Sequence record: MH595538.1
Direction: 5' to 3' (one strand)
Length of the DNA stretch: 64,000 nucleotides
The translations under genes and the position numbers were made by a program. Shown piece by piece: positions 6,054 to 59,244 of the stretch. How positions within the stretch are numbered: the stretch's first letter is position 1; every line of letters begins with the position of its first letter. The notes under the pieces are model-generated. The model was not told the DNA's origin and did not search any database. It saw only the letters and a program-made list of their open reading frames with translations.

Positions 6054-6074
6054 ATTTGAGTTCTATATAACCAT
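6054..6074 (+). promoter_or_regulatory. Candidate early (virion RNAP) promoter, copy 1
   Basis: ATTTGAGTTCTATATAACCAT; near-identical 21-mers at 14054 and 59151. Confidence 0.7.
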
Positions 6075-6080
6075 GATGAC

Positions 6081-6117
6081 CTCACTTCTTAAAGTGAGTT
6101 CGGCCGAACTCTTTTTT
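6081..6117 (+). promoter_or_regulatory. Overlapping hairpins or palindrome in the chmA leader
   Basis: CTCACTT/AAGTGAG stem overlaps the perfect palindrome GAGTTCGGCCGAACTC (6096-6111), which is followed by T6. Confidence 0.5.
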
Positions 6118-6147
6118 AATTTAATTAACCCCTAAGGGAGAATAACG

Positions 6148-8115
6148 ATGGGCGACCACGGATTTAATCGTAGCAACGAAGCAAACAACCCAGAAACTAA
6201 TGAGCAAGCCCAAGTAAATGCTCAAGATCAACAAAGCATGCAATCGACTGCATGGAATGCCCAACCAAGTAACCCGGAGAAGAAAATGTCCGATCAAGAT
6301 AACGACCTTACGATTCAAGACCTGTTGGCCCAGACTGGTCATTCGACTGCCCTAGGCAGCAACAGTTCTGCTGAATTGAAAGACTTCAAAGAGAACGTTG
6401 AAGAAGTTCTCAAAAATGATCGTAACGGCAAGATGCTTAAGCTTGACCTGATCACAAACAACCCTAACCTTGCTGCCCCTGGCATCAACCTATGGACCGA
6501 GAACTCTGGTGTTCTGTTCTACTTCTCTATCATTCCTGCGTGTCTGATTGCAGAAGGTCGTCTGAACAACCGCGAAGAATATCTAAACTCTGTTAAGACA
6601 GAAATCGATATGCCGGCTTCTAAAGTCTTCGATAAAGATTACTGTGCGGCAGTAGAGTCTAGCCTGCGCTCTCAAGCAGGTCCGTCTGTGAAGCAAGTAC
6701 GTAACTGTCATTACTACGTATTGCCAGCAAGCATGTCTCTGAAAGATGAGCGTACTGCTAAGATCGTCGTAGACTTGGCGTTCAACTGTATCAGCCAAAA
6801 CATCGCTCCTTCTAAGCCGCTTGCTGCTCAAGCACTGCGCTCTAAGAAGATCGAAGTAACTTTGAACCACCAAGTAAATGACAAGCGTACTTCTCAAACT
6901 ACTGACGGTACTCCGGTAGCGGCAGACGTTGTTGTTAGCATGATGGCGCAAGGCAAGACCGAAAAGAACCAAGGTCCAAACTCTGGCATGGCTCCAATCG
7001 TTCTGTCTCGTTCTTACGTGAAGCTTGATCTAATCAAGATGGATCCTCGTCTAGGCGGCATGGGTATGCATCAAATGCCTTACGGTATGATGCAAGGTCC
7101 AGTTCCAGCGTATCACCCAGTATTGATCTTGACTGATTCTGAAGGTTACGTTGAAGGTTCTTCTACTGTTGTAGAGAACCCAGGTACTTCTGCATGTGCA
7201 TTGGCATCTCTATGTCAGCTAGCCGTTGGCCGTAACTTCATGTCATTGCTTGATACACGCACAAACCACCCACGTAACGTTGGCCTACTAGGTTATGATC
7301 ATGAACCAATGAGCAATGCTCAATGGAATCCTCGTAAACTGGTTGTAGAGCGTACTAACCAAGCATCTAAAGAAGATCACCGTACCATGCAAGAAATGGG
7401 TGAGTTCTTCTTCCATCCAAACAGCATGACTGTAATGATGGATATCGGTGATGGCACACGTTCTTCTTACGCACATGCTGTATGGCTAGCGATTGCTAAT
7501 GGCGATACTGATGCGAACGAGTACATGATCTCTATCTTGGATACGTTCACTGGCGGTCACTTCGCTAAGATGTGGGCTGAGACAACCAACAATGCAATGC
7601 TGACTCTTCCAGGTCACACGCTGATTCACAACGGTACTTTCGAAGGCAGCGATGGTGCTCCTCATGACTTGCGTGAAATCGACTACTTCTACATGCTTGA
7701 AGCGTGTAAAGAGCAGTCTGCAGATCCATCAACTGGTGTTGCTCCATTCATGGCGACATTCGCACCTGGCGCTACTAACGGTGCTGATGGTCTACGTGCT
7801 CTGGATGTACGTCGTAAGGCTTACCATAACTTCGATCCAACGGTAACGATCACTGGGTTCTCTCGTCGTGTAACTATGCATCAACAGCTATCAATGGTAA
7901 TTGCTCGTGCTGTACATGCTGCTAACCTACACTTCAACCCATCTGGTCTTTACGATGAGCAGACTAACCATCAGCTTGCATACCAAGGCTTCGTACCTGG
8001 TACTGCGGTTGACCATGCAATGGTATCTGCGATTCTACAGCCTCAGTTCAACCAGAACGGTCAGAACATCTATGGTCACAACCCATACATGCCTGGCGGT
8101 GGTTGGGGTCGATAA
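6148..8115 (+). CDS. chmA: Chimallin, major phage-nucleus shell protein (phiKZ gp54-like)
   Basis: 655 aa, expected size, disordered N- and C-termini, strongly biased high-expression codons; directly upstream of nvRNAP beta'-N, the known chimallin position. Assignment rests mainly on synteny and size. Confidence 0.8.
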   Translation: MGDHGFNRSNEANNPETNEQAQVNAQDQQSMQSTAWNAQPSNPEKKMSDQDNDLTIQDLLAQTGHSTALGSNSSAELKDFKENVEEVLKNDRNGKMLKLDLITNNPNLAAPGINLWTENSGVLFYFSIIPACLIAEGRLNNREEYLNSVKTEIDMPASKVFDKDYCAAVESSLRSQAGPSVKQVRNCHYYVLPASMSLKDERTAKIVVDLAFNCISQNIAPSKPLAAQALRSKKIEVTLNHQVNDKRTSQTTDGTPVAADVVVSMMAQGKTEKNQGPNSGMAPIVLSRSYVKLDLIKMDPRLGGMGMHQMPYGMMQGPVPAYHPVLILTDSEGYVEGSSTVVENPGTSACALASLCQLAVGRNFMSLLDTRTNHPRNVGLLGYDHEPMSNAQWNPRKLVVERTNQASKEDHRTMQEMGEFFFHPNSMTVMMDIGDGTRSSYAHAVWLAIANGDTDANEYMISILDTFTGGHFAKMWAETTNNAMLTLPGHTLIHNGTFEGSDGAPHDLREIDYFYMLEACKEQSADPSTGVAPFMATFAPGATNGADGLRALDVRRKAYHNFDPTVTITGFSRRVTMHQQLSMVIARAVHAANLHFNPSGLYDEQTNHQLAYQGFVPGTAVDHAMVSAILQPQFNQNGQNIYGHNPYMPGGGWGR

Positions 8116-8136
8116 TTAGAGTCCAATCCTAACTGT

Positions 8137-8178
8137 TACTGCCCGCTGATCAGCGGGCAGTATACTTTTCTTTTCATT
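8137..8178 (+). terminator. Intrinsic terminator after chmA
   Basis: 26-bp perfect palindrome TACTGCCCGCTGATCAGCGGGCAGTA followed by a T-rich tract. Confidence 0.85.
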
Positions 8179-8203
8179 TTTTATCCCCGCCTAAGGAGAA
8201 GAA

Positions 8204-9697
8204 ATGGCAGCTAAGGTATTGGGACATAAAAACATGGATGATGAACTGGCATCCATTAAAGAGCCCATATTCGTAAATGACCTTCCATTGGAGACCGAGG
8301 AAGATCGTCAGTTCTTAAAGCAGTTAGCGATAAATCAATACGACAGTGATGATGTAGTCAGTGCAACACCAGCCTGTCGATGTGGAGAAACTCGTGGCGC
8401 ACACCGCATAAATAAACTTTGCGGTAACTGCATGACCAAGGTTACTAAGCCAAACAGTGGTAAAATTGAGTCTATGCTTTGGGTAGCGGCCCCTAGACCA
8501 ATCGGACTATTGCCGACTAACCTACTTTGGGTATTTTGCGCGGATGCCTTAAAGGCAAACTATTTTGATGGCCTATCATGGATCTGTGATCCATTTGCGA
8601 TTACACCTGATACGAGAGCCCCTAAGAAAGCACTGGATATTGTCAAGCGCTTTACGGCACTAGGTATTCCTCGTGGCATGCGAAGCTTTATTGATAACTT
8701 TGACCTTATCTTAATGAAAGTAATTGCGCCTAAGATTACTGATTTGAATAAGCGAAAAGAACTCGTTAGCTTCTGTGAAATGTATCGTAATCAGATATTT
8801 GCAAGAGCAACGCCTATTCCTAACAAGATGGCTATGGTTATCGAAGAGACGGGTGTTGCAAAGTATTACGATGAAACTATCGATTCGGCAGTAGAAGCCG
8901 CTTATACGGCAGCAGCAACGGCTGGCGATGAAGACCTTAGAAGACTAGAGTCTCGATTCACCAAAGTAGTTGCGTCAATGGCTAAATTCTGTAATGACTC
9001 AGTGAACCTGATTCTGCTTAAGAAGAAAGGTTTCCTTCGTCGAGTATGTTATGGGCTGCGAGTTAAGTTCGCCTTCCGTAATGTTGTGACATCTCAGAAT
9101 GGACGTCATGACTATCGCGGTATTGGTGTTCCTTATCATCAGCTGGTATCTTGCCTGGATCCGTTCATACGTGATCGTCTTGTAAAACAACATGGCATGT
9201 CAATGCGTGAAGCAACTGAATATGTCATGCTGCATCAGAAAGATTGCGACCCTCTGTTATGGGGTATTCTGGAAGACATGATCGATGAGACTCCTCCAGA
9301 GCAATATCCTAATCCGGCAATGGAAGGCGTTCCAACTCCATTGACTACTAAGCCATACTCTACTGGACGTGGCATTGGGGTAATTGGTACTCGCTTTCCA
9401 TCTCTTGACCGTGGTTCTAGTCAGCAACTGTTCATCAAGTACATCACTCGAAGCACTGTAGAAATTTCAGTTCTGGTTCTTAAAGCACCAAACTGTGATT
9501 TCGACGGGGATCAATTAAGCTTCAGTATTGTGATGGACAATGACTTGTTAGACGACGGAGGCTTCGAAAGATTCCAGCCGCACTATAACATCCATGATAC
9601 AGGAAAGCCCTTTAACATTCGCGGTATTATTGGTTTACCAGACGTTACTGTTGGAAACATTGCAGCTCGTCTGGAGTCAGAAGAGCTAGTGATTTAA
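8204..9697 (+). CDS. rpoC: Non-virion RNA polymerase beta' N-terminal subunit (gp55-like)
   Basis: Catalytic APNCDFDGDQ motif; Zn-binding CRCG...CGNC; KKKGFLRR and RFPSL motifs. Confidence 0.92.
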   Translation: MAAKVLGHKNMDDELASIKEPIFVNDLPLETEEDRQFLKQLAINQYDSDDVVSATPACRCGETRGAHRINKLCGNCMTKVTKPNSGKIESMLWVAAPRPIGLLPTNLLWVFCADALKANYFDGLSWICDPFAITPDTRAPKKALDIVKRFTALGIPRGMRSFIDNFDLILMKVIAPKITDLNKRKELVSFCEMYRNQIFARATPIPNKMAMVIEETGVAKYYDETIDSAVEAAYTAAATAGDEDLRRLESRFTKVVASMAKFCNDSVNLILLKKKGFLRRVCYGLRVKFAFRNVVTSQNGRHDYRGIGVPYHQLVSCLDPFIRDRLVKQHGMSMREATEYVMLHQKDCDPLLWGILEDMIDETPPEQYPNPAMEGVPTPLTTKPYSTGRGIGVIGTRFPSLDRGSSQQLFIKYITRSTVEISVLVLKAPNCDFDGDQLSFSIVMDNDLLDDGGFERFQPHYNIHDTGKPFNIRGIIGLPDVTVGNIAARLESEELVI

Positions 9698-9702
9698 CTT
9701 TA

Positions 9703-9726
9703 AGAGACAGGCTCAGGCCTGTCTCT
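9703..9726 (+). terminator. Hairpin terminator
   Basis: AGAGACAGGC-TCAG-GCCTGTCTCT directly after the stop codon; weak T tract. Confidence 0.6.
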
Positions 9727-9794
9727 ATCTAGCTTTACTGTATTTAATATTACGCATACTGTCAATTTATTGAGCAGTTAATAAGGAGAAACTC

Positions 9795-10433
9795 ATGGCC
9801 AGTTTAGATGCCCTATCGCCGCACCAGTTGAATCTGCAAGGTTCATTCGCACCGATGGGTCAACAGGCACTGCAAGCAATGCAACAAGTACAAATGGCTC
9901 AATTGCAGCAGCTACAGCAGCTAGGGATGCATTCCGCTGTAGAAATTGTACAAGGCTCCATGGAGCGTTTCCATGATTTCGCATTCGGTGAGACAGCGCG
10001 TAAGATTGAGGCTATTCGAAATAAAGCCGGTGCTTTATTCATGGCAAATGAAATCATGCCAATTACCGAAGTGGGGGTTATGCAGAATGCGCCTTTGGAT
10101 ATGGTTCAATATATCATGGCCGTACCTGAAATTGCACAGATGCACAGCAATGGAGAATTGAACGGATACTCAGGACGTTGGGACAATCCTCAGCCTAACT
10201 ACTTTGCTGAAGATAATCATACTTATCGTAATATGATGAATGGTATGATTCAAAGAGTAGAAGAGGATGATAGTGTCTACCATAAAGCAACAACTTTTGT
10301 TGAGCCTATCAAGCATCAGCATGAGTTAACATTCCGTAATCGAACTGATATCCATCAGACTATGCTTAACGTTATCAGCATGGTAGAAAATGGAGTGGTA
10401 GACCCTACGTCAGAGAACAACGATCTGATATAG
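9795..10433 (+). CDS. Conserved hypothetical protein with Q-rich N-terminus (phiKZ gp59 position)
   Basis: 212 aa, SD AAGGAG; QQALQAMQQVQMAQLQQLQQ; position by synteny only. Confidence 0.7.
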   Translation: MASLDALSPHQLNLQGSFAPMGQQALQAMQQVQMAQLQQLQQLGMHSAVEIVQGSMERFHDFAFGETARKIEAIRNKAGALFMANEIMPITEVGVMQNAPLDMVQYIMAVPEIAQMHSNGELNGYSGRWDNPQPNYFAEDNHTYRNMMNGMIQRVEEDDSVYHKATTFVEPIKHQHELTFRNRTDIHQTMLNVISMVENGVVDPTSENNDLI

Positions 10434-10441
10434 AGGTATCC

Positions 10442-10843
10442 ATGGCACAACCAGTCATATTTGAACTGGGCAATAACGGGATCATTACTGATCCCGAAGC
10501 CCTGTTAAGAAGAGCTTATGTTCTGGCCCAATTGGCCGACCAGAGCCAATCCGTTCTTTTTTCATCCAGTGTATTCAGCATTCAATATCTAGCTTCGGTA
10601 TATGGCAATGATCCATCTGAGTATGCGCTGCAATTAGAGGCAGCATTCCGCACTTATCTTTCAGAAATGTTTGAAGAAGGCGTAACTGTCAGTGTTAGTG
10701 AAAAGGATCCTGGTGAAAAAATAAAGTATACATTATCAATTAGTATAACCGCTACGATTAACGGAGCTAACTATACGCTATCTGGTGCACTATTTAGAGA
10801 CAATGCTGAAGATTTCACCAGACTGCAAGATGCTATTATTTGA
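10442..10843 (+). CDS. Small conserved protein, possibly a gp25-like baseplate or sheath-initiator fold
   Basis: 133 aa, SD GAGG; helices followed by C-terminal beta strands. Fold assignment is a guess. Confidence 0.55.
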   Translation: MAQPVIFELGNNGIITDPEALLRRAYVLAQLADQSQSVLFSSSVFSIQYLASVYGNDPSEYALQLEAAFRTYLSEMFEEGVTVSVSEKDPGEKIKYTLSISITATINGANYTLSGALFRDNAEDFTRLQDAII

Positions 10844-10853
10844 GGGACTTATA

Positions 10854-11360
10854 ATGGTAGATAAAACGAAAACTCCTGAAGAGCTTTACTCTCGACTATG
10901 GCCTAAAGTCAGAGAGTCGGATTTCTATGACATTTACCTGCCTTTGCTTCTGGACTCATCATCCCCAGAAGGCAGAATGCGATGGATTGATGAAATTGCA
11001 AAGAAGGCAGTAATGCGGGTCAATGTTGTTGATGATAACGATCATGACAATATCTTGTTCTGGGTGCCGCCTGTGATCAATACGTTTGATACAGTCAAGC
11101 ATCGTGGATTCCAAGATGTAGCCCTGGTGTATAATAATGAAGCGAATCGTCTCTCTAGCGACATAGCAGCAATTAAGCTTAGTCGGGAGTTAGATAATCG
11201 CATCATTGCACAGGACACTCCTCAGGAACATCTCGATCAATGGAAGATGATTCTAAATCGCAAAGGCATTGCAATGCCTGGTCAGGAAGAAGAAACCATT
11301 GCGGAAGAAAAGGAAGTGAAATCCGATGTCAGTGACAATGACTTCCAAGCGAACTGGTAA
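10854..11360 (+). CDS. Hypothetical protein
   Basis: Start moved from the track position to ATG 10854 after the SD GAGG; acidic C-terminus. Confidence 0.7.
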   Translation: MVDKTKTPEELYSRLWPKVRESDFYDIYLPLLLDSSSPEGRMRWIDEIAKKAVMRVNVVDDNDHDNILFWVPPVINTFDTVKHRGFQDVALVYNNEANRLSSDIAAIKLSRELDNRIIAQDTPQEHLDQWKMILNRKGIAMPGQEEETIAEEKEVKSDVSDNDFQANW

Positions 11361-13289: not shown

Positions 13290-13300
13290 AGGAGAGCCCG

Positions 13301-13972: not shown

Positions 13973-13981
13973 TTATATGAG

Positions 13982-14013: not shown

Positions 14014-14053
14014 ACAGCCGCTGTGAATTATTTGAGGAGAGTAGCCCTACCGT

Positions 14054-14074
14054 ATTTTATATCTATATAACCAT
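14054..14074 (+). promoter_or_regulatory. Candidate early promoter, copy 2
   Basis: ATTTTATATCTATATAACCAT, 31 nt before the start of the sigma-like subunit. Confidence 0.7.
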
Positions 14075-14105
14075 ATTGTCATCCCCTGATAAAAGGAGTT
14101 CTTTA

Positions 14106-15656
14106 ATGGAGATACATGCCCGTAAAGGTGTTTACGCCTTATACGTAAGACACAAGGGCGAGGAACTGGAATGGAAATTTTCAGTCTGGGCAACACTGGC
14201 CCGTAAGACCGGAGATGAAACTTCCGAAGAATTGACCGATGAGCAATTTGGCGCAACGAATGAATTCTTAGCATCCTTACCGGAAGCAGTTCAGGATAAG
14301 ATGTTTGATAACTATCGTATGGCTAGCATGCAGCTAGCAGAGTACAATAGTAAAGAAGAAGCAAAAGACATTTACTTCAAGTTTGCCCCTAAGATTGTAG
14401 AAGATCTTAGCGAAGAGATGTTGCTTGCTTGGGCCAATGACCATGGGCGTATTCATGTAGAGCCGCCGCCGGTATTGCGCTCATCAACTAATCCTCCTGC
14501 AATGACTTATAGCATCGATGAATCTTATCAGTTATCAGTATTCTGTATAGCAGTTAAGATACTGGCTCCAATGATGGGCAGTTATGTCGAGCTAGTGCGT
14601 GAGAAATCAACGCGTCAAAAAGCAGCAACCTTACATAAAGAAAGACAAGCCAACCGTCTATTCTTTGCAACCAACCTAGCTAATTGGAGTATTTATAAAA
14701 GACTGGATCTTTATCTTGATACGTATGCAATGCGCAGACAAGGAGTATTATCCCTGGCTACTCGTTATGGCATGGCAACGGCAAACCTTAACTCGCTGTT
14801 GAAAGGCCTAACGATTATTCGTCGTCTTATGATTGCTACAGTAAGGACAAATAAGAATGGCTCGATTATTGCCTTTGTTTATATGTTCCTGCAAGAAAAG
14901 ATTGACGACCTAGCAAAAGACGTAACCTTTAAATCTAAGTTCGCTAATCGACGTAATGATGATCAGGATGATGAGTCATATTCTGATAATTATCGTAAGC
15001 CCGAAAACGTTGATCAGGGAACCGTTATTGCCATTGACCATGAATTATCTGACTGGCGTAAATATGCTAATTGGCTAGGACTGGATGCTCAAGAGTGCCT
15101 AACAGCTGAATGTATTTTTGAGACCTTGATAGACAATGAGTATTTCCATGTCACGGATATTATTCACTATCCTGTAGTGGCAATGCTGATCAGAGAAAAG
15201 ACTTATCACATGATGATCGATAAGGTTGAAGTGAATACATTGTACGCAATGATCGCTTTAGCTTCGGTCTATTGTCATAAGAAAGGATGGACTGATCTAG
15301 CAGAGTTGTTAATTGCTTATCGATATGAAGTTGATCATACGCACATGCCAATGAGTTCTAGAAACGGTATGTCGTATAAGAGACTGACTGCGGAGCTAGA
15401 CACTGAACTATCAGAGCAATATCCGCACATTGACCAAGCAATGATCAATGCTCCGACCAATCCTGGTAAATTATGGATTGAAGATGTGATTAAAGCGGTG
15501 CTGTCGTTCCAATGGTCTGGACTTACAGAGCCGAGTTACCTGAGACATTCTCTTGCAAGATTCATTATTGATCGACCAAAAGAAGAAGAGATTAAAGCAA
15601 CCGAAGTCGGAACTGGCGAAGTTGCAGCAACACCAGTCTTAGACGTAACTAAATAA
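14106..15656 (+). CDS. nvRNAP sigma-like promoter-specificity subunit (gp68-like)
   Basis: About 516 aa, helical; SD AAGGAG before ATG 14106; position in the nvRNAP cluster matches gp68. Confidence 0.65.
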   Translation: MEIHARKGVYALYVRHKGEELEWKFSVWATLARKTGDETSEELTDEQFGATNEFLASLPEAVQDKMFDNYRMASMQLAEYNSKEEAKDIYFKFAPKIVEDLSEEMLLAWANDHGRIHVEPPPVLRSSTNPPAMTYSIDESYQLSVFCIAVKILAPMMGSYVELVREKSTRQKAATLHKERQANRLFFATNLANWSIYKRLDLYLDTYAMRRQGVLSLATRYGMATANLNSLLKGLTIIRRLMIATVRTNKNGSIIAFVYMFLQEKIDDLAKDVTFKSKFANRRNDDQDDESYSDNYRKPENVDQGTVIAIDHELSDWRKYANWLGLDAQECLTAECIFETLIDNEYFHVTDIIHYPVVAMLIREKTYHMMIDKVEVNTLYAMIALASVYCHKKGWTDLAELLIAYRYEVDHTHMPMSSRNGMSYKRLTAELDTELSEQYPHIDQAMINAPTNPGKLWIEDVIKAVLSFQWSGLTEPSYLRHSLARFIIDRPKEEEIKATEVGTGEVAATPVLDVTK

Positions 15657-15681: not shown

Positions 15682-17211
15682 ATGCCCATAATGAACAACG
15701 TACAAATGAACCCAAACATGCCTCCGCAGCCTCAAGTTCGAATCGTCCTACGCGGCGCTAAGTTCGTTGAGATTCCTGCGACGCAGCCGTTGTTTCATCG
15801 TCCTATGCAGTTTAATGCAGATCCTAACACGATCCTCCAGTTACAAAATGTAACGCATGGTGGTTCGCTGATTAACCCTCAAGCACTAAGGGAGATTGCT
15901 AAAGAAGTAGTACGTCCATCGCCAGTGCCGGAAGGTAAGTTGATGATCGCCAACGACTGGAATATTTCGCGCTTCGCAGTGTATCTAAACTTTGAGATTC
16001 ATGCAGCCGGCCGTGTCTATCATGAGATCATTACCGGATATACTGACCATCCTGAAACCTCAATGACTGGACTTATCGATCCGGACAGTCTCATCTTCAT
16101 TAACTCTCACTTGCGTGTTAATGAGTCGATGTCTATCGGTAACGGAGCTCCAAACGGCGTGTCCAACATGGCCGTGATGTCAGATACCAATGTTATCACT
16201 CCGGTGGGAATTGTAGATCCTTCAGGCAATGTGATGACAGGTGCACATACCCAACGTCCGCAAGATGTGTTGACTGGCTTGCAGATGGGTCTTCGTGGTC
16301 CACAGCATGCTGGAACATGGGATCCTCGAGGCAATCTAGATCGTGAAGTAACCGCGGGCCTTGGTCTTCCGTCTAGTCGAAACAACCACTGTTCTACAAA
16401 CTACTTGACTCGAATCATGGTTGGTGTTCGCGATGCACGTAACTCAGTAGGTCAATTTGCATCTGGGGCTTCTGATGTGGCAACACAGCAGATGATTGCT
16501 GGTGCAGCAGCAGTGACAGCCGCTGATTGTGAATCGGATTATATTTCTCTGAGTCTATTCCAGATGCTTAAACAGAATACGTCATATGGTCAGACTGGCG
16601 CATTCATGGTCAAGGAATTATTCGCGGCCTTGGGCAATGACAATATTGACTGGAATAATGTTGCTGCTCCGATGCTGTTGCCAAAAGGTCCTGGTCAAGC
16701 TACGGTGCTTATGGATAACAGTAACGGCTGGGGTGATTACTCAAACGAAACATCAGCGGCACATCAGTTAGCACACGGCATACCTGCCCTATGTGGACGT
16801 TCGCTGCTGTCTTCCTATGCGTTCACAGCCACTGGTTCTTTCAGTCATAATATCCATACGGCGAACTATGAGCACAGTACAACGATCTTCCCGATCAGTC
16901 CTATGTTCCAAGAAAACGCCAACATGACGGTTAAGAATCTATTGGAAACAATTATCTTGCCAGAGATCTTCTATGGCATCTGTGATAACTATGTGGTGTC
17001 TGCTTCTTACACGATGTCTGGTTCCATCAATATGGACGTTCAGTTAGACGGTGGCATTAAGATTCCTTATGCAGCACCTAACTACTGTGACCATATGTCA
17101 GCACCTACGGTCGCTATTGATGATCAGACTGTTAAGAACAACGGCATGATGATCGGCAAAATCGTTGATGAAGTCTTCCAGTCTTCTGGCGCTAATGTCT
17201 TGGTAAACTAA
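15682..17211 (+). CDS. picA: PicA/Imp1-like nuclear import factor (gp69-like)
   Basis: 509 aa directly after the sigma-like gene; FHRPMQF, GYTDH and RPQDV segments; size and synteny fit gp69. Confidence 0.6.
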   Translation: MPIMNNVQMNPNMPPQPQVRIVLRGAKFVEIPATQPLFHRPMQFNADPNTILQLQNVTHGGSLINPQALREIAKEVVRPSPVPEGKLMIANDWNISRFAVYLNFEIHAAGRVYHEIITGYTDHPETSMTGLIDPDSLIFINSHLRVNESMSIGNGAPNGVSNMAVMSDTNVITPVGIVDPSGNVMTGAHTQRPQDVLTGLQMGLRGPQHAGTWDPRGNLDREVTAGLGLPSSRNNHCSTNYLTRIMVGVRDARNSVGQFASGASDVATQQMIAGAAAVTAADCESDYISLSLFQMLKQNTSYGQTGAFMVKELFAALGNDNIDWNNVAAPMLLPKGPGQATVLMDNSNGWGDYSNETSAAHQLAHGIPALCGRSLLSSYAFTATGSFSHNIHTANYEHSTTIFPISPMFQENANMTVKNLLETIILPEIFYGICDNYVVSASYTMSGSINMDVQLDGGIKIPYAAPNYCDHMSAPTVAIDDQTVKNNGMMIGKIVDEVFQSSGANVLVN

Positions 17212-19456: not shown

Positions 19457-19517
19457 GTTCTATACCTTTTAAAGTCTTTAATACCTAACAGATTCCATAT
19501 GGATAAAGGATCGCCAA

Positions 19518-23564: not shown

Positions 23565-23608
23565 CAGATCCCTTCGGGGATCTGTATCTTAATATGTTTT
23601 TCTTTAAT
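23565..23608 (+). terminator. Intrinsic terminator
   Basis: CAGATCCC-TTCG-GGGATCTG followed by T-rich sequence. Confidence 0.7.
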
Positions 23609-23656
23609 CAGATAGTTTAAGGGGGTTTGGTGCCGTAAAGTCATAAAGGAGACGTT

Positions 23657-25245: not shown

Positions 25246-25256
25246 ATCTGTTAGAT
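25246..25256 (+). promoter_or_regulatory. ATCTGTTAGAT motif upstream of the ClpP-like pair
   Basis: GTTAGAT core inside the inverted repeat TAAATCT-G-TTAGATTTA. Confidence 0.45.
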
Positions 25257-28747: not shown

Positions 28748-28809
28748 AATAAACTCTCGTGAATAACTTTCATGCTATTAACCGCAACTGTTACAAATAG
28801 AGGCAATCA

Positions 28810-28816
28810 GTTAGAT
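28810..28816 (+). promoter_or_regulatory. GTTAGAT motif upstream of the gp79/gp80-like operon
   Basis: AATCAGTTAGATATTAAAGA, nearly identical to the minus-strand site at 19475-19494. Confidence 0.5.
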
Positions 28817-32107: not shown

Positions 32108-32494
32108 ATGTTAACAGCGTTAAAGACCTTTATTTCTGGCAATAGCTCTAGAATATGGTTCATTATTATCTTCGCGCTCATTGCTACAATTTTTGTACAA
32201 GGAACAATTAATTCTTCCTTGATGAAAAAGAAGGCAGAAGCAGAAGTTAAGGCCGGTAAGTATGAGGCGCAAATAACCGATCTAAAATTAAGGATCGATA
32301 AAGAAAGACGCGCATCAAGAGATGCGGAAATAGCCAGGGAAAACATTCAAAGACAATACAACCGTCTTATTGAAGATTTAGAGAGGTTACCTAATGAAAG
32401 TAATGGTGATATTAGCGATGGTGCTGTTCTTATCGTCTTGTGCAAAGCGGGACTCATACAGCGTGGACAGTGCCCTAACGAACCAGATTCCTGA
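32108..32494 (+). CDS. i-spanin (Rz-like)
   Basis: N-terminal transmembrane segment WFIIIFALIATIFV, long coiled coil, C-terminal cysteines. Confidence 0.7.
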   Translation: MLTALKTFISGNSSRIWFIIIFALIATIFVQGTINSSLMKKKAEAEVKAGKYEAQITDLKLRIDKERRASRDAEIARENIQRQYNRLIEDLERLPNESNGDISDGAVLIVLCKAGLIQRGQCPNEPDS

Positions 32495-32687
32495 TCGTTA
32501 CTTAGTCTATCCTGAGAAGGTTCTGGTTGAAGGAACATCCAAAAGAGATTTGACTAAGGCACTGTTGACAAATGAGAAGAATCGACAGCGAACCGTTTGT
32601 AATCTGTATATTGCACGAACATTAAACGACCCTGATCTTAAACTAGAAAAGCCGGTGTTCTGTAAGCCGGAAGAATCCAGTGAATAA
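32394..32687 (+). CDS. o-spanin lipoprotein (Rz1-like)
   Basis: Signal peptide with lipobox LSSC, own SD (GAGAGG), overlaps the 3' end of the i-spanin in another frame. Confidence 0.75.
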   Translation: MKVMVILAMVLFLSSCAKRDSYSVDSALTNQIPDRYLVYPEKVLVEGTSKRDLTKALLTNEKNRQRTVCNLYIARTLNDPDLKLEKPVFCKPEESSE

Positions 32688-32723
32688 AATAGACTCAGTT
32701 AAACTAACTCCCAGGAGCCATCT

Positions 32724-52459: not shown

Positions 52460-52471
52460 AAGGATAAGACC

Positions 52472-53146: not shown

Positions 53147-53148
53147 CT

Positions 53149-54531
53149 ATGTTAGAAATTTCAGAAATGAAGAAGTTGTTTGAAGAAATAACTTCAGGAA
53201 TCTATTCCAATGACTGGAAGATCACAGCAGAAGTACTTTCTGAAGGCAAGGTAAGACAAGAGATCCCCAAAGTTGAATATCTGATCACCAACAGCGACTA
53301 TACTGCTCAGGTAGCCAGTTATTTAACACTAGGTGTGCTAGTAGGTCCAGTGTTCTATAAGACGCACATAACGCCATATAAGGACAATTTACAAATACAG
53401 TTAACGATCTCTCCTCGAACTTCCCAGGCAGGTGATATAGAAACACTGCCTAAGGTTGTAAAGGTCTATGACGCTTATCCAAACAACAATGTCGACGTTG
53501 ATTTAGATGCAGGCTTTTCTACTTCGGATTTAACGACAGCAGAATCGGGACAATTACTGAACGTCTCTTTTCAGTTAATCGAACCGATCTTAAACGAAAT
53601 GCGAATGGCGAGTGTCAACGGCGTGTATAAGTACACGACTGTGAGTAACTTATTGCGCGGTCTACTGTCTTATGGGCTGGAAGGGAACACGGATACGGAA
53701 TCTTTAAAAGAATTCAACTATCCCGGCGTTAGAGGCGTTGATATCATTCCAGCGACTAACCAGAAGTCTTACGACACTATTCTTATTCCCGCTGTGTCAG
53801 AACAGGGTGAAATGAAGTTAACTAAGTTAACCAAGTTCATTCAACAGGAATATGGCGTCTACGGCACAGGCTGTGGTAGTTACTTCGATCGAGGATGGTG
53901 GTTTATCTATCCGCTCTTTGAACTACATCGTTTTAATCAAGTCAGTCAGAAACTCACTATCATTATTCTTGATGAAGATGAAGCTACTGGACTAGAGCAA
54001 ACCTATAAGAGAGATGGTGATCACATCACGATCTTGGCGACGGGTAAAACTTCTAATCTGGATAACTCTGAGCGAGTAGCAGCTAACATGGGCGATGCAG
54101 TGCGTTTAAATCGCGCATCAGATCTTAATGAAGGCGGAATAGAAATATCCAATAACAAGGCAACTGGTATTGGTACGCAGACTACCCGTCAAGCAACGAT
54201 TGAATCCAGGAAGTCTGGCTTGCAGAATGTATCTTATGCTAAGGACGTCTTTACGGACAATCCTTATAAAGAACTGTCTCGCATAGCAGCTCTGAAAGGC
54301 ATGAGACTGGTTGTAAATTGGCAAAGAGGTAATCCTGCATTCCTTAAGCCATCTATACCAGTTAGAGTCCTTTACGGCAAGAATAACCAGTTAGCGACTA
54401 AGTATGGTGTGTTGCATGGTTTTGAAGATAAGTTCATGACTGCATCGGGTAATTATGCCGATGATAACTTTGCACATTATCTCAAGCTGGTCTTGTTTGT
54501 TGATAAGTCTACAGAAGAAGCAGAAGAATAA
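53149..54531 (+). CDS. Baseplate hub-like virion protein (gp101 position)
   Basis: 460 aa, beta-rich; QQEYGVYGTG and WFIYPLF motifs; C-terminal LKPSIPVRV resembles hub proteins. Confidence 0.6.
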   Translation: MLEISEMKKLFEEITSGIYSNDWKITAEVLSEGKVRQEIPKVEYLITNSDYTAQVASYLTLGVLVGPVFYKTHITPYKDNLQIQLTISPRTSQAGDIETLPKVVKVYDAYPNNNVDVDLDAGFSTSDLTTAESGQLLNVSFQLIEPILNEMRMASVNGVYKYTTVSNLLRGLLSYGLEGNTDTESLKEFNYPGVRGVDIIPATNQKSYDTILIPAVSEQGEMKLTKLTKFIQQEYGVYGTGCGSYFDRGWWFIYPLFELHRFNQVSQKLTIIILDEDEATGLEQTYKRDGDHITILATGKTSNLDNSERVAANMGDAVRLNRASDLNEGGIEISNNKATGIGTQTTRQATIESRKSGLQNVSYAKDVFTDNPYKELSRIAALKGMRLVVNWQRGNPAFLKPSIPVRVLYGKNNQLATKYGVLHGFEDKFMTASGNYADDNFAHYLKLVLFVDKSTEEAEE

Positions 54532-54557
54532 TAGATAGGGGCAATTGCCCCTATCTA
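54532..54557. terminator. Bidirectional terminator
   Basis: TAGATAGGGGC-AATT-GCCCCTATCTA between convergent genes. Confidence 0.8.
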
Positions 54558-54570
54558 TAGCTTTTATCAT

Positions 54571-56181
54571 TTATGCTGCGTCAAAGAATTCATCATCGCT
54601 TCCAAAATCATCATCGTTAGAGCCGGAAGCATTAGCGACATTCATGTCTTCCAGTACACCAGCAGCTCCTCCTAGCTGAGACCATTCGTAAATAGCCTGA
54701 GATCTTTCTTCATTAATATCATCGTTGATACCGCCGTATGGTAAGAACTCATAAGCGTAGCTCTTACGACGCTCTGGAATATGTCCTGAGTCAGTACGGT
54801 CTTTACCTTTAGCAAAGGTTAGGAATTTGCGCTCACCTACTTTGTGAATGTGCATTAGACACTCACCGTCAAGTTTAGTATGTAGAGAACGACAGTCCAT
54901 GTACCAGCCGCCTGTTGATACTTTAACAGCAAAGTTAGAAGTACCTTCACGAGCCAGTTGTTGTGCTTCCGTAGAAAGCTGGTGAGCATTAATCTGAGTA
55001 ATGCCTTTAGGGAAACAGTGATTACGCAGTACTTCAAAGGCATGTACAATGCGTTCGTCAGTACGGCTGTTAGAATTACCGTTCTTAGTGATAAGGTGTA
55101 GGTAGTCGACGACAATGGCATGGATTTCATAACCTTCGTCGATGTAGCCGTCAATGATGTTAAGTAGATCCCAAACTGTCATGTTGTTTGGATCATAACA
55201 AACCATTTCAAAATGGTAGCCATTAACACTGAGTTTTTCTTTAATGTATTTAGCAGCTTCTAATACGTCAACAGTATTAAGGTCTAGTTTTTGTTTATGT
55301 TCAGCTTCCCATAGTGAACGGTAAATGATCGGTACGTCTTGCTCAGGCTTGTTCTCAAATGAGACACGCAAGATCATTGGTTTCTTGTTTTCATCTTCCA
55401 TCATAGAAGAAGGATCATTGTACATAGGTAGCCAGCGACAATGATCAAGTAGAATACCTGTCTTATAGTTGTGCGTTAATGCACCGAAGTTATATGAACC
55501 TCCGCGCATGTAGCCGCCAATGCCCCACATGTCGTTTAGGCCTTGTAGACCTGTCTTCAATACTGATTCGCCTGTATGCTGCTTCTTAGCAGCTTCTAGG
55601 GTGTTAGCGATGGATTCAGGATCATCGAAGTTAACATGGCCAGCAAACCCATTCTTTTCAGCCTGAGATTTATTCTTAGCAACTTCAAGTTCACCAATGG
55701 CTTCTTCAACAACATCAGCGATATCTACAAATTCTTGACTGAAGTTTACCGTGCGATGCAATTTAGCAATAGCCTTACCAATCTGCATCTTGCTATGAAT
55801 GTTCTTAAGTTCACCGACGATAGATTCAACTCGTTTAGCGTTTGCATGTGCTTCTTCTTCATCCACGCCTTGCAATAGGACATTAATGGTTTCGACATAA
55901 GTTTCATTATAAGCACAGTTGATCTTTAAGTGTTCAATAAGATCCTTAAGACCAATGTGTGTTTCAGAAGGCACGCCTTTAAGATAATCTAAACTAAATC
56001 TAAGAGCAGTAGCAATCTCTGCATCCGAGCCATCGCCGTGAGCATAAGAAGGCATTTTTAAATCAGCAAGGATATTGTCAACGAGCGGTTCAATGTTACC
56101 GTTCTTTGTATTTAGACTACGGTTAATATATAGCCCAACTATTGCTTTAACAAGTATTAAACAGGGGTTATTCTGTGACAT
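54571..56181 (-). CDS. dnaB: DnaB-like replicative helicase (gp118-like)
   Basis: Divergent Walker A GALTHNYKT, SFEN, Walker B IVVDYL, NAHQLS, GKDR. Confidence 0.85.
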   Translation of the reverse strand: MSQNNPCLILVKAIVGLYINRSLNTKNGNIEPLVDNILADLKMPSYAHGDGSDAEIATALRFSLDYLKGVPSETHIGLKDLIEHLKINCAYNETYVETINVLLQGVDEEEAHANAKRVESIVGELKNIHSKMQIGKAIAKLHRTVNFSQEFVDIADVVEEAIGELEVAKNKSQAEKNGFAGHVNFDDPESIANTLEAAKKQHTGESVLKTGLQGLNDMWGIGGYMRGGSYNFGALTHNYKTGILLDHCRWLPMYNDPSSMMEDENKKPMILRVSFENKPEQDVPIIYRSLWEAEHKQKLDLNTVDVLEAAKYIKEKLSVNGYHFEMVCYDPNNMTVWDLLNIIDGYIDEGYEIHAIVVDYLHLITKNGNSNSRTDERIVHAFEVLRNHCFPKGITQINAHQLSTEAQQLAREGTSNFAVKVSTGGWYMDCRSLHTKLDGECLMHIHKVGERKFLTFAKGKDRTDSGHIPERRKSYAYEFLPYGGINDDINEERSQAIYEWSQLGGAAGVLEDMNVANASGSNDDDFGSDDEFFDAA

Positions 56182-56316
56182 CTTTGTGCCTCGGTATCTT
56201 TGAATTTTATTCTAATAAGCTACAAGATGTTCCTCTGCTTGTTATTACCTAATGTGAGAATAAAAAATTAATCCCTTCCCCTACGGTAATCCTGTAGATT
56301 AAACAAACAGGGGCGT

Positions 56317-56796
56317 ATGATGTACTCTCTTTTTATACCGAATAGCCTTAAAGATGCTTTGGCTGCACATGGATGCAAAATAGAATCGGCACTAGAGTTC
56401 AAGAAGCTGAAAGAATATCTTGACATGTCAGAATTCTATCGCTGTCAAGATCAGACTCGTGCAGTCCTAGCAAAGCTAAAACAAAACTGGCCAGATCTTC
56501 CTATTTACGTTCCTGGTGAGAACGAGAATGCTGATATTGTTCAGCTTAATGAACTATCGGTAAACAGCGAAGGGTTCGATGAACTATATGCTTCGACTGC
56601 TTTATCGACAAATACAGTAGAGGCGTCACAGATGCTAGAATGTGTCGTCACTGTCGATGGTTATCTTTTATTGACGGAGTCTTCTGTTCAGCTAGAAGAC
56701 ACTTTTCTTGAGCGCGTAATTAAGGCCTTAGAAGATACCAAATCAATTGACGACATACTCAAACATGAAGTGAGTGTGTACTTCTGTAAAATTTAA
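56317..56796 (+). CDS. Head-associated protein (gp119 position)
   Basis: 159-aa ORF directly upstream of the major capsid gene. Confidence 0.65.
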   Translation: MMYSLFIPNSLKDALAAHGCKIESALEFKKLKEYLDMSEFYRCQDQTRAVLAKLKQNWPDLPIYVPGENENADIVQLNELSVNSEGFDELYASTALSTNTVEASQMLECVVTVDGYLLLTESSVQLEDTFLERVIKALEDTKSIDDILKHEVSVYFCKI

Positions 56797-56842
56797 ACTT
56801 AAAATTTCCTTTAAAACATAATACCGATCGGAGAATATTATT

Positions 56843-59035
56843 ATGGGTTACTACAATAAGGGCGAAGAAACTCCTTATGCTAAAGCACATACGGCACTGT
56901 CATTAGCTCTTTCTGAAAACAAGCTGGGCGATGAAGAAAGTGCTAAAGATATCGCTAGCATGGTTTCTGTTGAATCTCTAGACGAAGCAGTCATGGGTCG
57001 CATGGAAAACGTCGCAGATGGCATTGAAATGGTGTTTCAGTCTGGCGCAGTAGAAGACATGCTTTACACCTATGCTGGCTGTCAGCCGGGCGAAGATCGT
57101 ACTCCTTACAAACACGTTGTTGATCAAGCGAAACGCGCAATGATGGATGCTTGTCTAGCATCTGGTGACGCACTTACGTACCACAACTCTTACGTGAGTC
57201 CTCAGTCTGCAGACAACAAAACTACTGTCTTCGGTTCTGAAGATCACTCAGAGCAGGTTCTAGCGATCGAAAACTTCGATAACTTCAAGTTCGACGGTTT
57301 CCGCGTAGAATCAATTCTTTCTGCAGGTCTAACAGTTGCAACAACTCCATTTGCAGCAGCGTTTAAACCAGTTGTTGTTCCAGCATCTCAGTCTGGTCTA
57401 GACATGCAGATCACTATTCCTCAAGTTTACGGTCGTACTCAGCACCCTGATAGCGGCGCTCCTTGGGAACTAGAAAAACACTCAATCGTTAAAGCGGCAC
57501 TAGACCACACTATCCTAGAAGCGAACCACACTCGCATCTACCCTGTGGCAGCACACAAAAACGATGGCGGTACATTCGATGCACACACTGCAAACGACCC
57601 GTACCTAGTAGCAGCTGGTGATGTTTCTAACCAAACAATCACTGTTGGCACAACTGAATACCAAACTCGTCCTATTAAGTACGGTACAAAAGTAAACCTA
57701 ATCGGTGTGTCTAATCACGCTGGCATCAAAGCCACTGGTATGCAAACTGAAATGGATACTCTAGATCCAATGGTTTCTATCGGTGTTCAGTACATCAAAG
57801 CAAACAACGGTTCTGGTGGCGAAGCAGCACTCAAAGCAGACATCACTACTCTGCAAGGCGCGCTTCTAAACATCATGGCGGAAGGTAAGCACCCAGACAC
57901 TAGCACTTCTTTCGAAGGCTCAGTATGGATTAGTCACGACTCTCTAACAGCGGCTGGTGCGACTGTTGAAGCAACATTCGGTATTGGCGCGCTTCTAAAC
58001 CTTGCAGCTAATACTCCGTACAAGTTCAAGCTGACTATGCGTATCCACGCAACTGTTGACCAGCGTAATAAGAACATGGAAGTTGACTTGACTCGCGTTG
58101 AGTTCGGTCAGGTTCTTGCAGGCGCAGATTTCGGCACTACTATCGATGTAGGTAGCACTGAACACAATGCTCTTAAAGCAGGCGTATCGCTAGAAGGTCT
58201 AGGCTTTATGCCAGATGCACGTCGCTCAAACAGCAACATGCGCGACCTTGCGACTATCGTTGACCGTGGTACAACTACTAAGTTCCGCCTAGCGTGTCCA
58301 ATGGAAGCACCAATCTCATCTGTGAAACCAATCACAATGATGGGCTCTGGTGTAACACTAGATACTCTAACTGCTGTTAAGCGTATGCGTAACCTAGGCA
58401 CTGCTGCAACTGCACTGCTTGACTTCGAGAAGCGTCTAATCGCAACTCAAGGTATCGAAGACAGCCTATTGGCAATCGGTGATACCCTAGTTGACTCTAC
58501 GTACTTGCCTCGTGAAATCGACGTAACTGCTGCTGTTCGTACTATTCACTCTAAGAATGGTCTAGAAGACTTGCAGAACCAAATCGTTAACGCGATCGTA
58601 ATGCAAGCAAACGAAATGCTAGTTGACTCTGGTTACCGTAATGCACTTAAAGTGTACACTGGTAACGCAAACAACTTCGAAGTTAGCCTGTTCGCAGACC
58701 CAATCGTTTCTAACTTGATCATGTCTGCTGGTGATGGACGTACTCTTGGTAACAAGCGTCGCTTCAGCATCAACGAACTTGACGATCGTCGTTTCCGTAA
58801 CATCGTATACATCTCGTTCTCTCGTACAGATGTTAACGGCGCGGATCCATTGAACTTCGGTTGTCACCTATCTTCTCCTGCGATGATTTACCAAGCGACA
58901 ACTACTAAAGGTGGTGCAGTCTCTGGTGAAACACAAATGATCCCTCGTGAAGCGTTCTACGTAACTCTTCCGATCCTAGGTCGTTTGGATATCAAGGGAC
59001 TAGAAGGCTACTTCCACAACATGACAAACAACTAA
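56843..59035 (+). CDS. Major capsid protein (gp120-like)
   Basis: 730 aa; acidic propeptide with SVE/S and AIE/NFD sites; R.RSNSNMR and LPILGRLDI motifs; extreme high-expression codon bias; strong terminator after. Confidence 0.88.
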   Translation: MGYYNKGEETPYAKAHTALSLALSENKLGDEESAKDIASMVSVESLDEAVMGRMENVADGIEMVFQSGAVEDMLYTYAGCQPGEDRTPYKHVVDQAKRAMMDACLASGDALTYHNSYVSPQSADNKTTVFGSEDHSEQVLAIENFDNFKFDGFRVESILSAGLTVATTPFAAAFKPVVVPASQSGLDMQITIPQVYGRTQHPDSGAPWELEKHSIVKAALDHTILEANHTRIYPVAAHKNDGGTFDAHTANDPYLVAAGDVSNQTITVGTTEYQTRPIKYGTKVNLIGVSNHAGIKATGMQTEMDTLDPMVSIGVQYIKANNGSGGEAALKADITTLQGALLNIMAEGKHPDTSTSFEGSVWISHDSLTAAGATVEATFGIGALLNLAANTPYKFKLTMRIHATVDQRNKNMEVDLTRVEFGQVLAGADFGTTIDVGSTEHNALKAGVSLEGLGFMPDARRSNSNMRDLATIVDRGTTTKFRLACPMEAPISSVKPITMMGSGVTLDTLTAVKRMRNLGTAATALLDFEKRLIATQGIEDSLLAIGDTLVDSTYLPREIDVTAAVRTIHSKNGLEDLQNQIVNAIVMQANEMLVDSGYRNALKVYTGNANNFEVSLFADPIVSNLIMSAGDGRTLGNKRRFSINELDDRRFRNIVYISFSRTDVNGADPLNFGCHLSSPAMIYQATTTKGGAVSGETQMIPREAFYVTLPILGRLDIKGLEGYFHNMTNN

Positions 59036-59076
59036 TTGAGTGTCATGTCTGGATAGTCAACTATCTGTCACTGATT

Positions 59077-59117
59077 CAGGATGCCCTTCGGGGCATCCTG
59101 TAATCCTTTTATTTTTT
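59077..59117 (+). terminator. Intrinsic terminator after the capsid gene
   Basis: CAGGATGCCC-TTCG-GGGCATCCTG followed by T tracts. Confidence 0.85.
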
Positions 59118-59118
59118 A

Positions 59119-59144
59119 GGACAGGGCCCTTACGGGTCCTGTTC
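59119..59144 (+). other. Second hairpin
   Basis: GGACAGGGCCC-TTAC-GGGTCCTGTTC with G-U pairs. Confidence 0.55.
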
Positions 59145-59150
59145 AACAAT

Positions 59151-59171
59151 ATTTTACTTCTATATCACCAT
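59151..59171 (+). promoter_or_regulatory. Candidate early promoter, copy 3
   Basis: ATTTTACTTCTATATCACCAT upstream of the unit leading to nvRNAP beta-N. Confidence 0.7.
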
Positions 59172-59244
59172 AGTGTCCTGTCGCAATTATATTTTAAAAT
59201 AAATTGCGCAGATTAATGAAGCTAATTTTTATTTTCCCTCGTCC

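Follow-up and report, generated by a model that had tools for sequence, protein, structure and literature searches.

The three copies of a 21-base motif in the window, i.e. the whole analysed stretch of 64,000 nucleotides (bases 62001-126000 of MH595538.1, Vibrio phage BONAISHI), were confirmed and form part of a set of 24 early-gene sites in this genome. Very probably they are BONAISHI early promoters read by a multisubunit vRNAP packed in the virion, as was proposed in a sequence-only reading of this DNA; this proposal is well supported by homology to the promoters of phiKZ, 201phi2-1, and AR9, from which we infer the reading polymerase, the start sites and the early timing.

Motif copies in the window and in the genome

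The exact 21-mers lie on the + strand at 6054-6074, 14054-14074, and 59151-59171, in annotated intergenic DNA 5' of + strand genes, which agrees in sequence and position with the sequence-only reading. When up to three mismatches were allowed, the window gave these three copies and no others (0.08 expected from shuffles), and their leave-one-out PWM scores were 40.9, 28.2, and 35.6 bits, respectively. The continuation NN-TG(A/T)C, noted earlier as well, is present after all three; genome-wide, TG alone is conserved.

The whole-genome scan proposed as a check revealed 24 family sites, all of them on the + strand and in annotated intergenic DNA before + strand genes. At the threshold of 15 bits or more, the PWM found 24 sites on the + strand, none on the - strand and none in shuffled genomes; for the strict pattern CTATATHAY-N5-TG the + strand has 24 matches and the - strand a single one (1.9 expected). 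In an unbiased 7-mer screen TCTATAT was the top upstream-enriched word once terminator loops and T-runs were set aside. The same screen yielded no second (middle/late) promoter motif; apart from the early motif, its words came from terminator loops, T-runs and ribosome-binding sites. A recurrent element of several intergenic regions, a T-run followed by AATCAGATAG or TTAGAT, was rejected, being poorly separated from coding-region matches.

The consensus of the 24 sites consists of tTCAa (-33..-29), aaTTTtA (-24..-18), and TCTATAT.ACC (-16..-6), followed by TG, the G of which is the predicted start. CTATAT and A-8 are invariant, and the octamer reads TATAT[A/C/T]A[C/T] with A, C, and T at its sixth position in 10, 7, and 7 sites. 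In all 24 sites a G stands exactly 6 nt past the octamer, the spacing known for AR9, phiKZ, and phiR1-37 (PMC5312081); genome-wide, the information content is 1.8 bits for the T at -1 and 2.0 bits for the G at +1. The distance from the motif to the ATG is 39-49 nt at 13 sites, which gives predicted leaders of 23-33 nt. The first genes downstream are ORF71, ORF79, ORF114, and 21 others, none of them annotated as a virion protein (this enrichment alone is not significant), and none of the 24 sites lies 5' of vRNAP, capsid or tail genes.

Two co-varying subclasses can be distinguished, ..[A/C]ACCATnnTG (16 sites) and ..TATCT[A/G]nGTG (5 sites), with three sites fitting neither. Three copies of the latter subclass have terminator-like hairpins about 60-90 nt downstream and could therefore drive short early RNAs. 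The three TCTATATTATCTAGGTGAG promoters outside the window are the candidate sources of such RNAs. Three copies outside the window have about 20 nt of further downstream sequence in common.

Gene context of the three sites

The motif had been described as preceding chmA, a unit of a sigma-like subunit and PicA, and a unit leading to an N-terminal nvRNAP beta piece, and the corresponding genes were indeed identified: chimallin, homologues of PHIKZ068 and PHIKZ069 (the latter, ORF80, we take to be the protein called PicA), and a unit containing a PHIKZ123 homologue (Table 1).

Table 1. Predicted promoters, terminators and genes at the loci discussed (window coordinates)
Feature	Position	Strand	Details
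Early promoter P(chmA), predicted	6045..6078	+	TTCAA 6045-6049, ATTTGAG 6054-6060, TCTATATAAC 6062-6071, predicted start G 6078
chmA (ORF71), chimallin nuclear shell protein	6148..8115	+	PF25677 2.5e-13; phrog_4795 'nuclear shell protein' 1.6e-36
Strong terminator-like hairpin	8137..8162	+	11 pairs and T-rich tail, between chmA and ORF72
ORF72, nvRNAP beta-prime-like piece	8204..9697	+	phrog_2987 3.5e-95; annotation
Early promoter P(ORF79), predicted	14045..14078	+	TCTATATAAC 14062-14071, predicted start G 14078, leader 28 nt
ORF79, homologue of PHIKZ068 (sigma-like fifth nvRNAP subunit)	14106..15656	+	PDB 7ogp_B E 9.7e-07; phrog_3209
ORF80, homologue of PHIKZ069	15691..17211	+	tblastn match under PHIKZ069 in AF399011.1, 3e-12
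Possible degenerate early-type promoter, weak	19458..19491	+	TCTTTAATACC..AG, ends 27 nt 5' of ORF83 (nvRNAP beta-like)
Terminator of major capsid gene ORF113	59077..59100	+	directly upstream of P(ORF114)
Early promoter P(ORF114), predicted	59142..59175	+	TTCAA 59142-59146, TCTATATCAC 59159-59168, predicted start G 59175
ORF114, first gene past P(ORF114)	59275..60396	+	alternative in-frame ATG 59245
ORF115, PHIKZ123 homologue, nvRNAP beta-like subunit	60460..62031	+	PDB 7ogp_E E 1.9e-33; phrog_2943

The predicted chmA leader comprises 70 nt. P(chmA) aligns without gaps with the chmA promoters of pir03, C-ZP2022, the phiKZ-like phage PA02, Goslar, and OBP, although the closest relative of BONAISHI ChmA shares no more than 29% identity with it. 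ORF72 has no separate early motif in the chmA-ORF72 intergenic sequence. P(ORF79), whose -30 element is poor (CCCTA), has counterparts 5' of the gp68 homologues in pir03, C-ZP2022, and phiKZ, where the leaders measure 30 and 27 nt. Directly upstream of the nvRNAP subunit genes ORF72 and ORF83-84 there is no strong motif copy; the possible promoter before ORF83 scores 11.4 bits, hits of at least 10 bits being expected about 0.9 times per strand genome-wide, and at the matching gene position pir03 and C-ZP2022 have the full TCTATATAAC-N6-G. As to the third locus, the order of capsid gene, terminator, motif, small gene(s) and PHIKZ123 homologue is also found in pir03, Yong XC31, and phiKZ.

For each of the three window sites, a site in pir03 and one in phiKZ or a phiKZ-like phage occupies the matching gene position and can be aligned without gaps; the alignments involve phiKZ itself for gp68 and the post-capsid gp121, and phiKZ-like PA02 for gp54. 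One or more of the three are also present in each of C-ZP2022, Yong XC31, Goslar, and OBP. Across the three positions the invariant columns are TTT.A..T.TATAT.AC.....TG. A search for closer relatives in IMG/VR was fruitless: the chimallin-based search was empty, and the exact-pattern scan gave, among the matches listed, one chance-level match per contig, so that the footprinting rests on distant relatives. The papers on BONAISHI and pir03 contain no promoter analysis.

A further, looser variant at 9743-9763 had been reported before the operon starting at 9795. The sequence is present there on the + strand, but it falls outside the family, since it scores -22.0 and -16.0 bits in the two possible registers and mismatches three invariant positions; the best PWM score within 9698-9794 is -14.2. 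In pir03 a proper motif stands 5' of the operon syntenic to the one behind 9743.

Proposed mechanism and alternative explanations

The proposed course of events is as follows. The vRNAP, to the putative set of which BONAISHI ORF24-26 and ORF92 have been assigned (PMC6207643), would be packed in the virion and injected together with the DNA. It would recognise the extended AT-rich -10-like element TCTATAT[A/C/T]A[C/T] at -16..-7, assisted by the T-rich element (-24..-18) and TTCAA (-33..-29), and begin transcription at the invariant G six bases past the octamer (6078, 14078, and 59175). The transcripts would supply what is needed before the nucleus exists, namely chimallin and subunits of the non-virion polymerase, which would take over afterwards. 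Each unit would be insulated by a terminator just upstream, and the strong terminator behind chmA probably reduces the expression of the polymerase gene downstream. Reading by the vRNAP is favored because the first transcription of the nvRNAP genes cannot come from the nvRNAP itself. A predicted early promoter of AR9 can lose its activity through one deviation, hence some of the BONAISHI sites may be inactive. The leader RNAs of the three units do have 5'-proximal hairpins, yet these fold no better than those of shuffles (z -0.96, -1.83, and -0.34).

Service of the early genes by host sigma-70 promoters is very improbable. The core does contain a -10-like hexamer (TATAAC at -11..-6, or TATTAT in six sites), centred near -10 as the AT-rich TATA-type element of extended -10 promoters is, and in several sites TTCAAA stands some 16 nt upstream of it. 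However, TTGACA at 16-18 nt is lacking, the final hexamer position, where the key T is needed, is C in 17 of the 24 sites, and sigma-70 does not read the invariant C-15, T-14, C-6, T-1, and G+1. In a sigma-70 scan none of the three sites (6054, 14054, and 59151) was called as a + strand promoter, and the sigma-70-like matches in the regions of the window sites were fewer than in shuffles (20 vs. 30.8; 13 vs. 15.7). Moreover, the homologous promoters of phiKZ and AR9 function without host RNAP (PMC7598289, PMC5312081), early transcription in both phages being independent of protein synthesis as well (PMC7598289). Minus-strand sigma-70-like matches at 14082-14054, 59179-59151, and 9765-9737 were rejected: they have no minus-strand gene behind them and are created by TGTC, which most family members lack, and sigma-70-like matches are in any case fewer than in shuffles.

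We consider it just as improbable that the sites are of a middle class, read by the non-virion polymerase or by both polymerases, even though some nvRNAP genes of 201phi2-1 are under middle/late promoters and PHIKZ054 is transcribed from an early as well as from a middle start (PMC8244752). The known nvRNAP promoters differ from the motif (TATG at the start in phiKZ, AACA-N6-TA/G in AR9; PMC7598289, PMC5312081), the motif is a sequence homologue of an experimentally early class, and it fronts nvRNAP subunit genes, which require a pre-existing polymerase. That the motif is a regulator binding site, or a repeated mobile or recombination element, as the downstream sequence shared by three copies outside the window might suggest, is hardly credible, given that its orientation is always that of the downstream gene, that its distance to the start codon is set at 13 of the 24 sites, that sites lie behind terminators and that it is kept before orthologous genes between phages that share 25-38% protein identity. 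An early promoter read by the vRNAP remains the preferred explanation.

Specificity

The suggestion of a new vRNAP specificity found no support. The core, TATATAAC/TATATCAC, is one base off the phiKZ consensus TATATTAC, the phiKZ T occurs at this place in seven of the 24 sites, one of which is exactly TATATTAC, and the alignment with the corresponding promoters of phiKZ or a phiKZ-like phage is gapless at all three gene positions. Judged by its sequence, the motif is a local version of the early promoter known from phiKZ-like phages, and no new type of signal. It is rather unlikely, in our opinion, that the BONAISHI/pir03 lineage has shifted the specificity of its vRNAP or that the two BONAISHI subclasses are used differently. 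Such a shift could be read from three features: octamer position 6 is free, a CCAT discriminator has been added and TTCAA is fixed at -33..-29.

Significance

The analysis provides the first promoter map, with 24 predicted early units, for BONAISHI, a candidate biocontrol phage against a coral pathogen; the three predicted start sites in the window belong to this map. In the BONAISHI paper no homologue of the phiKZ nvRNAP beta subunit was reported (PMC6207643); the annotation is corrected here, as ORF115 matches PHIKZ123 and ORF79 matches PHIKZ068. The current picture is left as it is by the BONAISHI result, which should be useful to whoever first purifies a vRNAP and asks for its target sequence.

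Comparison with known early promoters

From Pseudomonas phiKZ to marine Vibrio phages, the promoter sequence, the spacing to the start (predicted in BONAISHI) and the place before chmA, gp68, and the post-capsid unit are unchanged, with protein identity in this comparison down to 22-38%. The early promoters have been given as TATATTAC for phiKZ, TATATTACDWHDGTG for 201phi2-1, and ATATTATYWWADTG for OBP (PMC7058600), the phiKZ consensus having in addition a T-rich upstream part (Ceyssens 2014, as quoted in PMC7598289, PMC8244752, PMC7058600). PhiKZ resembles BONAISHI in the octamer, which is the same bar one position, in the N6 spacer to a G, in BONAISHI the predicted start, and in a TTTGAG/T-rich element at about -20. 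The motif likewise stands 5' of chmA (as seen in phiKZ-like PA02), of the gp68 homologue and of the unit behind the capsid gene that leads up to gp123; for the early promoter of PHIKZ054 a primary start has been mapped (PMC8244752), and chmA is followed by ORF72 as PHIKZ054 is by PHIKZ055. The leaders differ little in length between phiKZ and BONAISHI, where they are predicted (gp68, 27 vs. 28 nt; chmA, 66 vs. 70 nt), and the numbers of sites are close as well (28-32 vs. 24). In contrast to phiKZ, BONAISHI allows A, C or T at octamer position 6, conserves CC(A)T past the octamer and has TTCAA instead of an A-tract at -33..-29.

The early promoters of 201phi2-1 and phiKZ were described as conserved at -10, -20, and -30, and the latter two parts may be compared with the BONAISHI elements aaTTTtA and tTCAa. 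201phi2-1 has TATATTAC-N4-GTG and OBP TCTATATTAT-N4-GTG, both resembling BONAISHI; the Goslar chmA promoter, TTATATTACCTAGGTG, is nearly identical to the BONAISHI subclass TCTATATTATCTAGGTG. The early promoter at gp124 of 201phi2-1 lies 5.2 and 7.4 kb 5' of the beta and beta-prime genes, the same spacing as from ORF79 to ORF83/84. Unlike those of BONAISHI, the predicted or mapped early promoters of 201phi2-1, OBP, N1M2, and Goslar carry TTTCARR directly upstream and mostly a T at octamer position 6. AR9, with the early promoter AAATATATATTAT-(6N)-G+1 (PMC5312081), differs in its uracil DNA, the absence of a nucleus, its Bacillus host and another upstream part, yet it has in common with BONAISHI TATATTAT and, behind a 6-nt spacer, a G that is the start in AR9 and the predicted start in BONAISHI.

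The motif family in the BONAISHI genome

The window is 100% identical to record MH595538.1 of Vibrio phage BONAISHI (record coordinate = window coordinate + 62000), and the genome-wide scans were made on the full genome (288,967 bp, joined from pieces) with its annotation. The paper describing this phage (PMC6207643) contains no promoter or motif analysis. The three 21-nt copies noticed in the sequence-only reading were recovered at their exact positions on the plus strand, in annotated intergenic DNA ahead of plus-strand genes; a search allowing up to 3 mismatches returned exactly these three matches versus 0.08 expected. A shorter core with 2 mismatches was found 8 times versus 8.1 expected, without enrichment beyond the three copies, and the signal therefore resides in the perfect copies.

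Allowing one mismatch at most, the genome holds 18 copies of the core TCTATATNACCAT: 15 on the plus strand before genes, and three, each with one mismatch, within genes on the minus strand. In the whole-genome scan suggested by the sequence-only reading, a weight matrix trained on the 15 plus-strand sites yielded 24 sites at 17.8-48.4 bits, the next matches not exceeding 11.6; at scores of at least 15 the final matrix found 24 sites on the plus strand, none on the minus strand and none in shuffled genomes. Compared with the annotation tables, all 24 lie between genes and point toward a plus-strand gene. Relative to the invariant G, the consensus reads tTCAa (-33..-29), aaTTTtA (-24..-18), TCTATAT.ACC (-16..-6), T (-1) and G (+1), with the full 2 bits in columns -15..-10, -8 and +1; the sixth position of the octamer TATAT[A/C/T]A[C/T] is A in ten sites, C in seven and T in seven. 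Predicted leaders measure 23-33 nt at 14 of the 24 sites. An unbiased screen of upstream 7-mers ranks TCTATAT just below terminator loops and T-runs (20 regions versus 2.6 expected). The motif and its placement are direct observations, and the family is useful for annotation.

Features discussed in the text (window coordinates unless another sequence is named)
Feature	Coordinates	Remark
Motif copy ahead of chmA (ORF71)	6054	predicted start G 6078
Motif copy ahead of ORF79	14054	predicted start G 14078
Motif copy ahead of ORF114	59151	predicted start G 59175
Family site with TATATTAC	record 181350	
Hairpins in the predicted chmA leader	6081-6117	
Terminator-like hairpin, chmA to ORF72	8137-8162	11 pairs, T-rich tail
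ORF79	14106-15656	
ORF83	19518	
ORF84	21584	
ORF115	60460-62031	
Sub-threshold match before ORF83	19458-19491	11.4 bits
T-run then AATCAGATAG or TTAGAT	5982-5991, 23606-23615, 28805-28814, 2573-2582, 25247-25256	intergenic
TCTATATTATCTAGGTGAGTGTACTTGA promoters	record 136280, 210205, 274689	loci L005, L006, L007 outside the window
Tandem motifs before chmA, pir03	L009 19580, 19789	
Tandem motifs before chmA, C-ZP2022	L010 19767, 19975	
ORF94-ORF95 gap	32495-32723	229 nt
Unannotated ORF	32394-32687	97 codons
Stretch beside ORF49c	record 54226-54989 (L004 4226-4989)	765 nt, no annotated gene

Genes behind the three sites

ORF71 is chimallin (PF25677; phrog_4795, 'nuclear shell protein') and ORF72 a piece resembling RNAP beta-prime. 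ORF79 matches PHIKZ068 (E 9.7e-07), the fifth subunit in the solved structure of the phiKZ non-virion polymerase (nvRNAP), ORF80 matches phiKZ gene PHIKZ069, and ORF115 matches PHIKZ123 of the same structure (E 1.9e-33). The earlier description of the downstream units as chmA, a sigma-like subunit/PicA unit and a unit leading to nvRNAP beta-N therefore holds. Both ORF79 and ORF115 are annotated 'hypothetical protein' in the record. A homologue of the early-expressed phiKZ nvRNAP beta subunit was reported absent from BONAISHI (PMC6207643); judged from its match, ORF115 is the predicted protein that fills this gap.

ORF72 carries no early motif itself; read-through, or else a promoter that escaped recognition, would have to account for its expression. 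A strong terminator-like hairpin separates it from chmA. The predicted chmA leader opens with a hairpin, CTCACTT..AAAGTGAG, and so does that of pir03. In BONAISHI a second, short hairpin of terminator-like form comes next, GAGTTCGGCCGAACTC with six T behind it, at a distance of 30 nt from the ATG. The chmA-leader folds do not outperform those of shuffled sequences (z -0.96 and -0.41). In ORF114 an in-frame ATG at 59245 lies 30 nt 5' of the annotated start 59275, leaving the true start ambiguous, and a 20-codon ORF starts in the leader near 59216. Elsewhere, the ORF94-ORF95 gap is covered by an unannotated ORF overlapping the ORF94 end in another frame. An early-type promoter stands at the right end of the stretch without annotated genes beside ORF49c, which is annotated as an RNA-binding protein (its pir03 counterpart as a TROVE-domain protein).

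Weak and additional candidate sites

The looser variant proposed at 9743, before the 9795 operon, is present as a sequence but does not belong to the family: it scores -22.0 or -16.0 bits in either register, with mismatches C-15 and T-13, the G one base too far and no TTCAA. In pir03 the operon syntenic to the one behind 9743 has TCTATATAAC-N6-G, in front of an extra gene, which makes a promoter near 9743 plausible. The best sub-threshold intergenic match (TCTTTAATACC..AG) ends 27 nt before ORF83, the gene position at which pir03 and C-ZP2022 have the full motif, and may be a weakened early promoter of the beta/beta-prime operon. In AR9, single deviations can abolish early promoter activity (PMC5312081).

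Copies of the T-run/AATCAGATAG element precede the start codons of several genes (ORF69, ORF85 helicase, ORF86 Clp, ORF91) by 25-45 nt, and one stands about 95 nt before the early motif of chmA. The element may represent a second promoter class, poorly separated from matches inside genes. The three near-identical early-type promoters TCTATATTATCTAGGTGAGTGTACTTGA have about 20 nt of their transcribed sequence in common; a GC hairpin and T-run follow within about 60-90 nt, and the next start codon comes after 106-166 nt. Short early RNAs or attenuated leaders are what they might produce.

Conservation and interpretation

Sequenced phages include no close relative of BONAISHI; its chimallin is 29% identical to the nearest ones. 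Upstream of chmA, pir03 and C-ZP2022 have TTCAA-N14-TCTATATAAC..TG, the phiKZ-like phage PA02 TTTGAGATTTATATTAC-N5-TG, Goslar TTATATTACCTAGGTG and OBP TCTATATTATTATGGTG. The gp68 homologue of pir03 and C-ZP2022 is preceded by TTCAA-N14-TCTATATTAC with a leader of 30 nt versus 28 nt in BONAISHI, and PHIKZ068 by TTTGAGATCTATATTAC-N6-G at 27 nt. The motif also lies between the capsid-gene terminator and the PHIKZ123-homologue unit in pir03 and Yong XC31, as does TCTATATTAC-N6-G in phiKZ, after the terminator of capsid gene PHIKZ120 and before PHIKZ121-123. Before chmA, pir03 and C-ZP2022 carry tandem early-type motifs about 209 nt apart, each with TTTCAAGAAA upstream.

That the three sites are promoters is well supported by sequence comparison, and homology with phiKZ, 201phi2-1 and AR9 suggests which enzyme would read them, from which base and when. 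On the favoured reading, the injected virion polymerase (vRNAP) would bind the extended -10-like element and start at the G, and the resulting mRNAs would encode chimallin and subunits of the second polymerase. Host sigma-70 promoters are a very improbable explanation: TATAAC or TATTAT with TTCAAA 16 nt upstream resembles a weak promoter of this type, but the scan calls no plus-strand sigma-70 promoter at the three sites, sigma-70 matches are rarer than in shuffles, and in 17 of 24 sites the -10 box ends in C instead of the key T. It is just as improbable that the non-virion polymerase reads the sites, as its known promoters differ in sequence and it could not supply its first subunits itself. 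Least credible seems a repeat without promoter function, which would leave fixed orientation, spacing to start codons and conservation at orthologous positions unexplained.

Comparison with known early promoters

The promoter interpretation of the sequence-only reading agrees well with phiKZ-type early promoters. Published ones are phiKZ TATATTAC, 201phi2-1 ..TATATTACDWHDGTG, OBP ..ATATTATYWWADTG and EL ..CCTACATTATY (PMC7058600), and AR9 AAATATATATTAT-(6N)-G+1, the start 6 nt 3' of the element being conserved in phiKZ and phiR1-37 (PMC5312081). AR9 early transcription persists under chloramphenicol (PMC5312081). According to the 2020 review, bioinformatics can detect a motif of this kind in all jumbo phages encoding these polymerases, it proved to be an early promoter wherever tested, and early transcription is independent of host RNAP and of new protein; no vRNAP had then been purified (PMC7598289), and we found in the literature no later vRNAP structure with promoter DNA. 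In phiKZ, dRNA-seq placed the early motif at 32 starts, with leaders mostly of 31-40 nt, and PHIKZ054 has one early and one middle start (PMC8244752).

The motif thus belongs to a well-known kind of element and will not surprise a specialist. The proposed new vRNAP specificity is unsupported, since the phiKZ sequence recurs exactly at one BONAISHI site (Table) and the three BONAISHI sites align without gaps with three phiKZ or phiKZ-like counterparts (invariant columns TTT.A..T.TATAT.AC.....TG). The geometry also has a precedent: in 201phi2-1 neither the beta nor the beta-prime gene carries its own early promoter, and one at gp124 stands 5.2 and 7.4 kb before them. BONAISHI matches this arrangement with the motif ahead of ORF79 followed by ORF83 and ORF84.
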